Shown: positions 25,198-63,715 of the stretch, one piece after another
Layout: every line of letters begins with the position of its first letter
How positions within the stretch are numbered: the stretch's first letter is position 1
DNA from: Bugula neritina
Taxonomy: Eukaryota > Animalia > Bryozoa
Direction: 5' to 3'
NCBI GenBank assembly: GCA_964035545.1
Contig: OZ037773.1
Span: 2,633,751-2,697,750, forward strand
DNA length: 64,000 nucleotides
The notes under the pieces: model-generated
The model's database searches: none
What the model was told of the DNA's origin: nothing
Seen by the model: only the letters and a program-made list of their open reading frames with translations
Program-made: the position numbers and the translations under genes

Positions 25198-28100
25198 ATG
25201 AATTATCTAACATTAGTAAGTCAACCCGCACTTTATAGTGTTTTTTCTTATATGAGTGTTACAAGTAAATTGGTATTAGTTTGCATATTCACATATGTAC
25301 TTTGACGTCTTATAGTGAACTGCAATTATTAGTGGATAAGTCAAATGTGAAAAACAATTGCCCCTAACGAGATTCAAACCACATACCTTAGGCCTGCAAG
25401 CACTCATGTTCAACTATTACACCACAGGGGCTGCTGGGTTAACTCAACACTAGAATTTTGTATCTAATTTGATATACATGATGCAATTTTGGCGATGAAA
25501 ACATTTGACTGTTAAAACAAAGCATGGAAAAATTATTATGCCACTAATGTTTAAGTATAATGTCTACTTTATATACTTTATCATCGTGTATATTTTGTAG
25601 AGCTGTCTGTTACTTTTGCTGAACACAGTGAGGGAAATATGTTCACAGCGGCAAGTATTCACAAAGAAGGTCAATGAGTGAGTATACTTATATCTGTAAA
25701 TCAGTAGATCAGTGATTACTGTTACAAAAAAAGTCAGTATTGCTCATCCTGTGTTATCCAACAACTAGCTTCTATCGTTTGCCAAATCAAATGTTGAAAT
25801 GCCTACATGATTATGAGCAAATTGACGCTGGTAATTTAAATATAGAAACTAAGCACTCTACTTAGTGAATTGCTAGACGCAGCACCTGTTTGGTGGTCAC
25901 TGTGTGCAGTAGTTTGAGGTTTGAAGTTGGAAGCTTAGAGCTCTAACCTAAATCCTCAACTTCAACATGAAAACCTCCTTCCCCCAAACTAATGTACTCA
26001 GTGACTGCAGATTCTGTGCTGCGTCTAGCTTCTATTATCTCACTGTGCATTTCTATTAAAGACATAGAGAGCACACTGCATGTAGATGTGAGTTTAATGA
26101 CTTCTCTCCTCTAAATGATATATTCAAAAAGGTGATGTTGCTGAATTTTGTAGCCTGAACTTCCTGAACTTAGAGCCCTACTTACCGTTCAGTGGTATAA
26201 AAATTGTGTCCATACAGCGCGATGTTAACAATCCTACTCAGTCACTAGTAGCAGACCAAATCTCTATAAGTAATGTAGACTTTCAAACCGACTACCGGAA
26301 TATTCTGTATGGAACCAGAGGACTTCCTTCAATTAATGTTGACGGCCCTAAAGAGGCGGCCAAATTTTTAGATATTGTTGAGGTACTCCAACCTGACAGG
26401 AAAACATTATATGTGGTGCAGAGGTTTTGCGTCAGGTTGATTAACAGGACAACTTCTATCACTGAAACAATTACGGGAAATTGCAATCAACTAGGCCTGG
26501 AAACTGGAAGTTTATCTGAAGCTAGATTTACAGATATAGTTTCTGCTGTACTAATCAACAAGACAAAAATTGCAGTTCTTGAAGGTGGAGGAAACTTTTT
26601 GCAAATTATTAGCATTGAGGATGACAGGGTGGGAAAGTTTGCTTTTTACCAGAAGCCAACAACCATTATTGAAGAACCCTTAACTGGGATGTATTTAGTT
26701 TTTGATAATAATGGCATAGAAACATTGTCATTACAAAATTCTTCATTAGTGGCAAGCCTTACTAGCCGCAGTGGTCTTGCATACACCAATGACGGAGTTC
26801 TGAATGCATCTACGTTCACTTACATCAGTAATGCTTTTTACTTTGGAGATACTATTATAGCAGCAGACTTCAAAGACCATGTGATTCGAGTAATAGACAC
26901 AGTAAGCAATACAGTTAGTTCCATTTGTCAGCTGTCACCTCTTGCCACTTTAATTGATGATCTCCTTACCAAAGCTACAAGCATTTCAGAGTGCACCATA
27001 GCGTCTTTATATTCGGTTGGCATTTTTCCAGAACACAATTTCATTCTCCTAGGAGGTGAAAAAGGCCTCATCAAACTTCACATACGCATTAATGCCAAAA
27101 GTAAGTGTTCTATTCACTGTTTTTTTAAATAACCTGGCAACTTTTTTCATGCATTCAACAATCACATACAACATGATGCAACTTTTTAACGAAGTCAAAA
27201 TGTTTTTTGCTAGCAATTATTGTCACGTTGTTTGAAACATTTTTTTAGAGTAATATATTTTTGTGGCTTATTGACTAAAAGATAGGTTATTTATGAAAAA
27301 GTTTGATAACTGTAAAACACTGCACAGCACACATAGTTTAAATTTATCATGTTATAAAGACAGTGACAATTTTCTTATAATTCAAAATCAAGTTTTAAGG
27401 CTGAACAACTCAAAATGTTTGCCACATAATAGAGCGACTAAAACTATTTCAATGTTTGGATAATTGGTTTGTCATGGGCTGGGAAAATTTCAGCAGAAAA
27501 ATTATTAATATTGTTTACATACACATTTAAAGGAATACAACTATGAATAAATAATAAAAAGTAATAAATATGGCAGTCATTGGGTCTTATAATGACTAAT
27601 TTGTCTACATCATTTTGCATGTACATCATTTTTTGTATTTCTGCTGTTCGATTATTGCTATTTGGGATGCTAATTTTACTTTCAATAATTGCTTAGAAAT
27701 TATTTTAATATGCTTCTGCTAGCTAAACGAGTTGAACAGAAATATTTATCATTCCAGGCTGTGAAACTACTGAAGATTGTGTTAACTACTGTAAGTCAGG
27801 CATTGAGTGGGGCTGCAAAGACCTACCTGCATATCAACTCTGTTCACCTTCTTCTCAAAAATGTTTTTACAAGTGTGTTTGTTAAAATTTTATACTATAT
27901 TTATTTAATTGGCAATTTTCTTTTATTGAGACAGTACGAAATTCAAGGTGTACACATTGTAAAGTTGTAATTAGCCAGTAGTCCTGGTGTAATAGGCAGC
28001 GGTCTGCTTGCAAGCCGGAGGTCGCAGGTTCGAATCCCAGGGAGTCAATTATTTTATATACATTCGAATGAAAAGCAACCAGTAATGCATGAAATAGCCT

Positions 28101-62300: not shown

Positions 62301-63715
62301 ACTTTTGTTTATAAAAAAAGTTATTGAAGATTATTTATATAAATCTGGAAAAACCGAAGAAACAGAAGGAAAAACTGTTAGAGAAAATTAAATTGTCCTA
62401 TTTACCTACCAACATATAGCCATATGTAGCTGTTTGCATCAGACTTGAAAGGGTTTAGCAATTCTAGCACGCTGTCCAACTCTGCCTCTGATTTCGCAGT
62501 AAAGAGACGTGCTCTATGCTGCTTGCAAGTCAATAAAGCCTTTTCCATGGTCATCAGCTCTTGTGAGCCAATGAAGAAACAGCGGCAGCCGTGTACACAA
62601 AACCGAGGGGTTTTTCCACCATCAACAACTACTGGTTTTAAAGTGAAGTCCGGGTTTGCCAAACAGTTTCCTGGGAGAGCCAAAAAAATACCAATAGCTC
62701 TAACACTTATAAGTACTTTAAAATAAATTAGGGTCATTTAGCTTAATTTAGTACACACTAATTATCTCTAGTTTTTAGCTGTTTTTCACAGTTTAGCTGC
62801 TAATGTATGTAGTTTCTTGCATTAGACTGACAATTTTAATTTTAACAAATACAGCTGAATAAGCAAAGTTTTTCTTTTTAATTTTGCTTATTTTTTATGT
62901 TTTACCCTAGTTTTTTAGTTAACTAGAGATATATAATTAGGTAAAATGACCCTTTAGTAATTAACTACAGGTTTTTAGCGAAACGTTTACTAGCTTTAAA
63001 AATGTCAAAATATTTGCATTTATTTCTATTCAAGCTTTTATCTTTGTTTATAAATGACATGCAGAGAAAAAGATACTTTAGACTGAGAGCACAAATTCTA
63101 CCTGCTTCGCACTTTTGTTTGAGGAGACAATGATCTTGCTCTGAGCACTTCCGTCTGCAAATTGTGGTTCCTGAAGAAATCTCAACACACTGTTGGTCAG
63201 GGGGACAGTTGAAGAGGCCCGAACGACATCTGAGGACGCAGAAACAACATTTATAGCAAACATCAAGAGACAGAACAAATTGGGAAAGCAACACACACCT
63301 AGTATGAGTTGAACCTTGAAGCATATTACATTACCAAATTAAGCATCAATAAAAAACCTGTTTAGTTTTGTTTTATATAACAACATGAAACTATTGAGCT
63401 ACACGTGTATAGTAGCATCTTCAACCTTTCTTAGTAACCTAGATTTCCCACATTAATAAGCTGAATCTCCAATAAAATGTTTTAGTGAACATGATAAATC
63501 ATGGAAATAGAATTTATATAAGACATTGGAAAACTATTACTATTCTTTCTATTTCTTCAAAACGTTTTTTCAGTATTTTTTCATATAGATTTCAATTGCA
63601 TACGCAGTGGTGCACTGGTTGAGTTCAGGATCACATGCTAAAGGAATGTTAGGATGGCAGTCTAAGCTTTTTCCAGGTTTACAGAATCCTGGACAGTCTG
63701 TATGGTCAGTACATT
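44373..63715 (-). CDS. Gene D (5'-partial): single-pass receptor; family Cys-rich modules - C-type lectin - sushi - C-type lectin - TSP1 - sushi repeats - FN3-like/PTPRJ-type juxtamembrane region - TM - short tail (SUSD1-like C-terminal half)
   Basis: Exons (minus): 63715-63604 and 63229-63102 (family Cys modules); 62670-62410 (CLECT); ~62271-62200; ~61934-61781; 61284-61060; 60624-60511; 60311-~60100 (sushi-like); ~59428-59180 + 58481-58290 (CLECT; [23 protein letters not shown]); 57761-57600 (TSP1 [18 protein letters not shown]); sushi exons 57205-57038, 56530-56315, ~55821-55600, ~55243-55043, ~54603-54411, 53815-53742 + 50171-50043; 49854-49749; 48644-48515; 48252-48102; 47409-47246; 46917-46790 ([19 protein letters not shown]); 46278-46124 ([21 protein letters not shown]); 44988-44889; 44440-44373. 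Two junctions (near 62.3 kb and 59.4 kb) are unresolved. Confidence 0.8.
44442..44652. repeat. 12-bp minisatellite (TGTAGTAAATTT)n abutting the last acceptor of gene D
   Basis: About 17 copies. They give the spurious [11 protein letters not shown] ORFs. Confidence 0.93.
45237..45580. mobile_element. PIF/Harbinger-type MITE, copy 2
   Basis: Same TIRs as 28304-28721, TTA TSD (45234-36 / 45581-83), ~74 bp shorter internally. Confidence 0.9.
45830..46115. repeat. AT-rich pentanucleotide low-complexity repeat (ATATG/ATATA)
   Basis: Directly visible. Confidence 0.7.
46505..46582 (+). mobile_element. SINE family 2 body fragment
   Basis: TGATGTTAGGAAGGGC.TTCAGTCATAATTGCTC..AGCCCTTAGC matches 18593-18660 in reverse. 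Confidence 0.6.
48853..48936 (-). mobile_element. tRNA(Ala)-derived SINE head, family 1
   Basis: GGGATTCGAACCCAAGACCCCTGGCTTGCAAGCAAGTGTGCTAACCATTACACCAC. Confidence 0.7.
50713..51995 (+). CDS. MADF (Myb/SANT-like) + BESS-motif DNA-binding protein, 209 aa, Harbinger ORF2-type
   Basis: Four GT-AG exons 50713-50742, 51200-51320, 51422-51581, 51677-51995 total 630 nt with no stops. MADF: [51 protein letters not shown]: [33 protein letters not shown]. Confidence 0.85.
52095..52221. repeat. (AT)n microsatellite between the convergent transposon genes
   Basis: Directly visible. Confidence 0.97.
52302..53145 (-). pseudogene. Harbinger (HARBI1-like, DDE_Tnp_4) transposase pseudogene, C-terminal part
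   Basis: Fragments in order: FSLREFLMR (~53145-53119), [18 protein letters not shown] (53080-53029; cf. IFNYRLSRARRVIENxFG), [11 protein letters not shown] / KATIA..HN, [solo LTR], [43 protein letters not shown]. Several stops and frameshifts. Confidence 0.82.
52541..52847 (+). mobile_element. Solo LTR (307 bp) inserted in the transposase
   Basis: TGT...ACA termini with a 4-bp TSD GTAT (52537-40 / 52848-51). Removing it rejoins the HN-FL motif of the transposase. Confidence 0.75.
55303..55385 (+). mobile_element. tRNA(Ala)-derived SINE head, family 1
   Basis: GTGGTGTAACGG..GCTTGCAAACCGGAGGTCTCGGGTTTGAATCC. Confidence 0.7.
55893..56032. repeat. ~27-31-bp tandem repeat (GGTGTCAA..TAGGTCAAATGAGTCAG)n
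   Basis: About 5 imperfect copies in a gene D intron. Confidence 0.75.
61373..61490 (-). mobile_element. tRNA-derived SINE, family 2
   Basis: GGCTAAGGAC..GAGGCACAGGAGCAATTATAACTGGATGCTCTTC.TAACATCACCA, near-identical to the 18593 copy. Confidence 0.75.

Follow-up and report, generated by a model that had tools for sequence, protein, structure and literature searches.

A cluster of six related genes, designated A to F, extends over ~110 kb of chromosome 9 of the bryozoan Bugula neritina and encodes a real, undescribed, and lineage-specific family of surface receptors. The stretch of DNA analyzed here, referred to as the window, comprises 64,000 nucleotides of contig OZ037773.1 and corresponds to C9:2633751-2697750 of the 216,009,554-base assembly. 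The Darwin Tree of Life assembly of this species amounts to 216.00 Mb in 9 chromosomes, and the draft genome of 2020 is GCA_010799875.2 (PMC7576161, PMC11480708). All six genes share one head, made up of a signal peptide, an NHL propeller, and two small Cys-rich modules; D, E, and F are full receptors, and A, B, and C are short, head-only genes. The reading that we favor, and consider probable, is that A-F are surface proteins built around this common NHL head, with D, E, and F being long receptors and A, B, and C a derived, lipid-anchored, head-only clade.

In D, E, and F, the head would cap a long type-I mosaic stalk, consisting of a C-type lectin-like domain (CTLD), sushi, a second CTLD, TSP1, and a sushi array, and followed by one transmembrane helix. 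In A, B, and C, the head alone would have been kept and joined to a short tail exon with a hydrophobic C-terminus of the glycosylphosphatidylinositol (GPI)-signal type. The propeller would be the part of an adhesion or recognition receptor that binds the ligand. Beneath it, the Cys modules may serve as a plug or spacer, a role that EGF has behind YWTD propellers and PSI behind sema domains. The predicted lipid anchor of A, B, and C may hold the same kind of head near the cell surface, where these proteins could be co-receptors, competitors, or sheddable forms and would be less likely to function as dedicated secreted decoys.

Exon chain and fold of the common head

Three exons of ~950 bp are conspicuous within the window as long single open frames, and each of them is the centerpiece of one short gene. 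Splice sites were placed by reading the exon boundaries, and the gene models were assembled from them. The exon lengths are 18/77/947/115/122 nt in A, 18/74/953/115/95 nt in B, and 18/77/947/118/131 nt in C, all junctions are AG/GT, and the intron phases (0, 2, 1, 2, 1) are identical in the three genes, which bears out the common exon chain proposed in the first-pass annotation. The same annotation had put the identity of the three proteins at roughly 35-50%, and the propellers indeed share 46% (A-B), 36% (A-C), and 37.5% (B-C), with A, B, and C being 24-30% identical to D. The head exons are as follows, the second Cys module (Cys2) being the last in each chain.

Gene A
25198..25215, plus strand: start exon (MNYLTL, phase 0)
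25601..25677, plus strand: signal exon, 77 nt, phase 2 end
26154..27100, plus strand: NHL-propeller exon, 947 nt, phase 1 end
27758..27872, plus strand: Cys module 1, 6 Cys, phase 2 end
29038..29159, plus strand: Cys module 2, short 4-Cys form, phase 1 end at a GT donor

Gene B
32064..32081, plus strand: start exon (MNQYSL)
32444..32517, plus strand: signal exon, 74 nt, phase 2 end
33035..33987, plus strand: NHL-propeller exon, 953 nt
34326..34440, plus strand: Cys module 1
34896..34990, plus strand: Cys module 2, short 4-Cys form

Gene C
42224..42241, minus strand: start exon (MKWCLL)
41485..41561, minus strand: signal exon, 77 nt, a conservation peak against the sibling lineage described below
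39652..40598, minus strand: NHL-propeller exon, 947 nt, the sequence used for folding
38911..39028, minus strand: Cys module 1, Ser at the third Cys
37948..38078, minus strand: Cys module 2, in the long form of 7 Cys that D, E, and F also have; conserved phase-1 donor at its end

Searches of the A, B, and C propeller exons against Pfam gave no match at E up to 1. The language-model atlas indicates NHL repeats for the head, and a cluster profile retrieved 5330 proteins at E up to 0.001, of which the sampled non-bryozoan matches carry Pfam NHL and TEN_NHL; taken singly, 7 of 19 relatives match Pfam NHL. Against solved structures, the family profile found NHLRC2 (7e-21) and the NHL domain of SOQ1 (1e-20). 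An AlphaFold (AF2) model of the C propeller exon alone has 24 strands, with a predicted local distance difference test (pLDDT) score of 85 and a predicted template modeling (pTM) score of 0.86, and its top Foldseek matches are the NHL domains of SOQ1, TRIM71, Brat, Thin, and NHLRC2 (E ~1e-11). Since atlas, profile, and fold evidence all agree, we identify the head as a divergent propeller of the NHL type with six blades. Four invariant Cys, spaced as two pairs, occur in the propeller, and the spliced models include signal peptides and a few N-glycosylation sequons, features that are consistent with an extracellular domain.

The first Cys module has six Cys, the third of which is lost in C, and the second has four in the short form of A and B. 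In C, D, E, and F, the second module has seven Cys, and the exon after it opens with an eighth. Pfam returned nothing for the Cys exons but a chance-level Lustrin_cystein match, and profiles of the modules match A-F only; the modules were also looked for beside other propeller paralogues and in a contig of another organism, and none were found. A contig of another organism (ENA ERZ4903326) holds a propeller exon that is distantly related and, after it, a Ser/Thr stalk, a transmembrane exon, and a Tyr-rich cytoplasmic tail; therefore, NHL-propeller receptors occur outside Bugula neritina too.

A whole-genome search with the propeller placed two further close members of the cluster, E and F, both upstream of the genes above: E lies 42 kb upstream, and F straddles the window start, with its propeller exon ending at 334. 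The paralogue matches range from E 1e-23 to 1e-62, well past chance, and more distant propeller exons number at least 33 on other chromosomes, which brings the genome to at least 39 altogether.

Full receptors and the origin of the short genes

The first two exons of D within the window (63604-63715, 112 nt, and 63102-63229, 128 nt) have the phases and Cys spacing of the Cys exons in A, B, and C, so that their earlier assignment as homologues stands. A search past position 64000 for a propeller and signal exons of D on the minus strand, as had been advised, located both of them. The propeller exon is 947 nt long (window-equivalent 64490-65436, minus strand, 775 bp past the window end) and is bounded by the phase-2 acceptor and the A|GTAAGT phase-1 donor also seen in the short genes; the signal exon of 65 nt (window-equivalent 66303-66367, minus strand) has a related sequence. 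The features of D and F in the window are listed below.

Gene D
63604..63715, minus strand: Cys module 1
63102..63229, minus strand: Cys module 2
62410..62670, minus strand: first C-type lectin exon, phase-1 acceptor compatible with the Cys2 donor
46785..61901, minus strand: body, exon blocks collinear with gene E, splice sites partly approximate
59154-59441 and 58282-58533, minus strand: second CTLD
57574-57756, minus strand: TSP1
~57197 to 50031, minus strand: sushi array
46178..46278, minus strand: transmembrane exon, 19 hydrophobic residues then RLCQHR

Gene F
1..334, minus strand: 5' third of the propeller exon, which spans window-equivalent -598 to 334, with the gene body ahead of position 1
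494..576, minus strand: candidate signal exon, 83 nt, phase 2 end, GTGAGT donor

Within the body of D, a Cys block and a sushi domain precede the second CTLD, and membrane-proximal exons follow the sushi array. Pfam recognizes two Lectin_C domains, TSP_1, and at least five Sushi domains in the body, no domain in the membrane-proximal exons, and neither YD nor EGF in the D exons. The exons after the E and F propellers are collinear with those of D, in the order Cys1, Cys2, CTLD, Cys block, sushi, CTLD, TSP1, and sushi array. The E orthologue in the older draft assembly is the NCBI hypothetical protein EB796_015229, a mis-modeled entry that runs past the exon end and has a low-complexity N-terminus.

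Several observations concern the receptor genes individually. One sushi exon of D (window 55588-55859, minus strand) is 94.5% identical over 272 nt, and 89% at the amino acid level, to an exon of F some 70 kb apart (C9:2620088-2620356), with the remainder of the two genes not being alignable as DNA; judged by this alignment, the near-identical exon looks like the product of local gene conversion or exon replacement. An intron of D (window 51179-51995, plus strand) holds open frames with MADF-like and BESS-like sequence, and close to where D is presumed to end (3' side; window 44373-44700, minus strand) there is a tandem 33-nt repeat that, if coding, would give an 11-residue unit in ~8 copies.

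In the tree, A-F constitute one clade (100/100), well separated from all other paralogues, with the internal order D, (E,F), (C,(B,A)), so that A, B, and C are a single nested clade, and all duplications of the cluster predate the split from the sibling lineage. Of the exon that comes after Cys2 in D, a small one remains in C. Because D, E, and F share their full exon order and A, B, and C nest as one clade, descent of the head-only genes from a receptor-type ancestor is supported by these comparisons. The earlier proposal that one receptor had given rise to versions of its head is accordingly retained as to the receptor-type ancestor, which both the nested clade and the exon remnant in C favor, and amended as to number, the cluster having six genes instead of four and three receptors instead of one.

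The sibling lineage also has an extra A-like propeller copy (JGI sample 3300002729, on a 4-kb contig), which is 68% identical to A, has an internal deletion that takes out the invariant Cys/Arg motif, and ends early. No counterpart was found in the present assembly, and the copy suggests that genes have been gained and lost in the A branch.

C-termini, divergence, and competing explanations

Window 42166-31946 has a collinear counterpart, with 80-91% identity, in a 10.5-kb JGI metagenome contig, and the same divergent B allele is present in two other DNA runs that bear the same organism label. That these sequences, which differ by 6-20%, represent ancient balanced haplotypes was considered and rejected: an unlinked paralogue on chromosome 2 is equally diverged (87% nucleotide identity over 2.3 kb, with a synonymous divergence (dS) of 0.18), dS is uniform, at 0.18-0.23 across all six propeller exons, and B. 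neritina is known to be a complex of cryptic species. As the unlinked locus is equally diverged, the divergent contigs come from a sibling cryptic lineage, in which all six genes have 1:1 orthologues with 86-94% amino acid identity. Between the two lineages, the ratio of nonsynonymous to synonymous divergence (dN/dS) of the propeller exon is 0.42 in A, 0.17 in B, 0.12 in C, 0.21 in D, 0.23 in E, and 0.23 in F. All six heads are under purifying selection, and at a dS of ~0.2 such ratios mean that they are not pseudogenes. Replacements are mildly enriched in loops (11%) over strands (7.5%), and no hypervariable patch was seen in the heads in this comparison between sibling lineages.

This comparison also bears on how the short genes end. 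The first-pass annotation had described B as stopping in a secreted form, C as ending in a GPI-type tail, and A as stopping before a hydrophobic tail. These C-termini have to be revised: in A, B, and C, as in D, a canonical phase-1 GT donor closes the Cys2 exon, and tail exons, a candidate one in the case of A, lie downstream.

30216..30331, plus strand: candidate tail exon of gene A, with a strong phase-1 acceptor TTTTTATTGTAG, small residues (SASA), and a hydrophobic C-terminus
35690..35790, plus strand: tail exon of gene B, with a short hydrophobic C-terminal stretch
37345..37398, minus strand: small exon of gene C (DFC...DKDV), with the eighth Cys, like the start of the exon after Cys2 in D
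36301..36410, minus strand: tail exon of gene C, with a Ser/Thr stalk, small residues, a 7-residue spacer, a 19-residue hydrophobic C-terminus, and a stop

The tail exon of C differs from that of the sibling lineage by two in-frame indels (+3/-3) and has a conserved stop, and the frame of the B tail exon is open in both lineages through a hydrophobic stretch of 12 residues. The in-frame TAG that follows Cys2 in B falls within its GTGAGT donor. A GPI-type tail of C made by read-through of Cys2 was rejected, given that the read-through hydrophobic peptide diverges like an intron in the sibling lineage and the donor is conserved. By inspection, GPI-signal grammar fits well in C and plausibly in B and A. 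Because all three tails have this grammar, A, B, and C are read as more likely lipid-anchored than secreted; they splice most simply to GPI-type tail exons, which leaves the soluble decoy forms of the first-pass annotation without a basis in the gene models, and secreted isoforms are possible by intron retention.

A number of points weigh against the interpretation of A-F as long receptors and lipid-anchored heads. The signal peptide of D is weak, a start exon upstream of its signal exon was sought and not found, and the cytoplasmic tail past its transmembrane exon was not resolved. No long contig of the sibling lineage that covers the A tail exon is on record, so that the A tail stands without orthologue support. 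A search of RNA runs gave no match, the related public contigs all being collinear genomic DNA, and for lack of a transcript match the splicing of the tail exons and of the head of D to its body is deduced from phases and conservation. Mature C, finally, has an odd number of Cys, of which one could be a free thiol or take part in an intermolecular disulfide.

The alternatives to this interpretation differ mainly in what they make of the short genes. The first-pass annotation saw a receptor with a set of soluble decoys or ligands at a fast-evolving allorecognition, immune, or gamete-recognition locus, with B secreted, A truncated, and C lipid-anchored, an account that we regard as improbable. 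It draws on the presence of clustered, diverged paralogues in receptor and head-only forms, on stalk domains (CTLD, sushi, TSP1) that are common in invertebrate immune-type receptors, on in-frame stops after each Cys2 donor, where intron retention would yield secreted forms, on the colonial life of Bugula, and on the dN/dS of A, the highest of the six at 0.42. The whole range of ratios (0.12-0.42), however, comes without a hypervariable patch and with only the slight preference of replacements for loops, every gene has its orthologue in the sibling lineage, the tail exons downstream are conserved, and the large divergence is genome-wide, being matched at the unlinked chromosome-2 locus. No second allele was seen over 6 kb in one run, which is a weak argument as contigs can hide variants. 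On these ratios and on a divergence equal to that of the unlinked locus, an allorecognition, immune, or gamete-recognition locus is unsupported, as is an allorecognition or immune role of A-F.

It is also conceivable, although we think it doubtful, that A, B, and C are each expressed in two forms, one lipid-anchored when the last intron is spliced and the other a secreted head when it is retained, and that the cluster in this way supplies regulated soluble competitors of D, E, and F. Stops 2 to 18 codons past each Cys2 donor, the addition of two residues only by read-through in B, and the presence of the tail exons would all suit such an arrangement; yet AT-rich introns should by chance contain short in-frame stops, the read-through peptide of C is not conserved, and the RNA search, having given no match, lends no support either way. 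Least credible, to the point that we give it very little weight, is that A, B, and C are decaying, truncated receptor copies with no function. Such decay would explain the absence of the whole stalk from the three genes, the loss of half of Cys module 2 in A and B and of one Cys of module 1 in C, and the A-like copy with an internal deletion in the sibling lineage, but it is contradicted by frames that are intact and splice sites that are all retained in both lineages, by the dN/dS of 0.12-0.42 across a dS of ~0.2, by indels in the C tail exon that keep the frame, and by duplications that are older than the lineage split.

Other features of the window belong to its surroundings. Between F and A, a 952-codon open exon of IQ-motif repeats (window 3829-6687, minus strand) represents an unrelated, ASPM (abnormal spindle)-like gene, and window 9740-11260 is a 1.5-kb low-complexity tract of ACN/CTN type, which reads as poly-Thr, poly-Leu, or poly-Tyr depending on the frame. 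Highly repeated short elements are found in introns and between B and C (window 36600-37200, 37600-37860, 45234-45583, and 28246-28720); some of the short repeated elements of the cluster are tRNA-like in translation, their contig depth reaches into the thousands, and copies in the introns of E are 94-96% identical.

Relation to known proteins and significance

A-F combine a known fold and a known receptor style in a new way. With the NHL-repeat propellers of NHLRC2, the SOQ1 lumenal domain, Brat, and TRIM71 they share the fold, profile-level sequence similarity, and a repeat signature of the C-x-R...R and D-x-x-x-x-[IL]-R type, but their propeller is N-terminal behind a signal peptide and has two conserved Cys pairs. 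They also lack the RING, B-box, coiled-coil, or thioredoxin part of the TRIM-NHL and NHLRC2 type: the upstream exons amount to a start exon and a signal peptide only, with the Cys modules and, in D-F, CTLD, sushi, and TSP1 lying downstream. Teneurins, which serve in cell-cell recognition, resemble D-F in that they pass the membrane once and expose an NHL propeller on its outer side, and relatives of the A-F propeller family match Pfam TEN_NHL. Teneurins, however, have a type II topology and contain EGF repeats, a YD shell, and a toxin-like domain, whereas D-F are of type I, with the propeller at the tip of a CTLD/sushi/TSP1 stalk, an N-terminal signal peptide, and, in the D exons searched with Pfam, no YD or EGF. 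The selectin-like CTLD-sushi receptors of invertebrates likewise have CTLD, sushi arrays, and one transmembrane helix; D-F differ from them in the head of NHL propeller and Cys modules, the second CTLD, TSP1, and the lack of an EGF between lectin and sushi.

More general parallels exist for the head and for its two modes of attachment. In the YWTD-EGF units of LDL-receptor relatives and in Sema-PSI, an extracellular propeller stands directly before compact disulfide-rich modules; the propeller and Cys modules of A-F are comparable by general analogy, the propeller class being different and the Cys modules having no Pfam family. One binding module on signaling or long forms and on lipid-anchored short forms is known from Fc-gamma-RIIIa/IIIb and the GFR-alpha co-receptors, to which A-F may correspond, with sequence grammar predicting the anchors of the short genes. 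The Hydractinia Alr and Botryllus FuHC loci are marked by extreme allelic polymorphism or diversifying selection on the binding domain; for A-F, the comparison between sibling lineages gave a dN/dS of 0.12-0.42, no hypervariable patch, and a divergence equal to that of the unlinked locus. A literature search on NHL-propeller receptors in bryozoans or lophotrochozoans turned up no description of the family, nor was any paper found that describes A-F, and with NCBI holding the E orthologue as a hypothetical protein, the first-pass annotation was right not to recognize a described family.

A further idea, to which we assign a low probability, is that the NHL propeller on a CTLD/sushi/TSP1 stalk, together with its lipid-anchored head paralogues, might be a class of recognition receptor new to animals, which bryozoans would use to tell self from non-self between colonies or to manage their vertically transmitted, bryostatin-associated symbiont. 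The cluster by itself opens no long-standing question. To our knowledge, almost no surface receptors have been characterized in Bryozoa, and here the NHL propeller, whose best-known carriers are cytoplasmic TRIM proteins and teneurins, is found as the distal head of type-I receptors. The cluster provides a clean and testable case of a mosaic receptor giving rise to head-only, probably lipid-anchored paralogues, and, since the public annotation of the E orthologue in the older draft misses the gene structure, the corrected models should be useful for studies of immunity, symbiosis, and colony recognition in Bugula.

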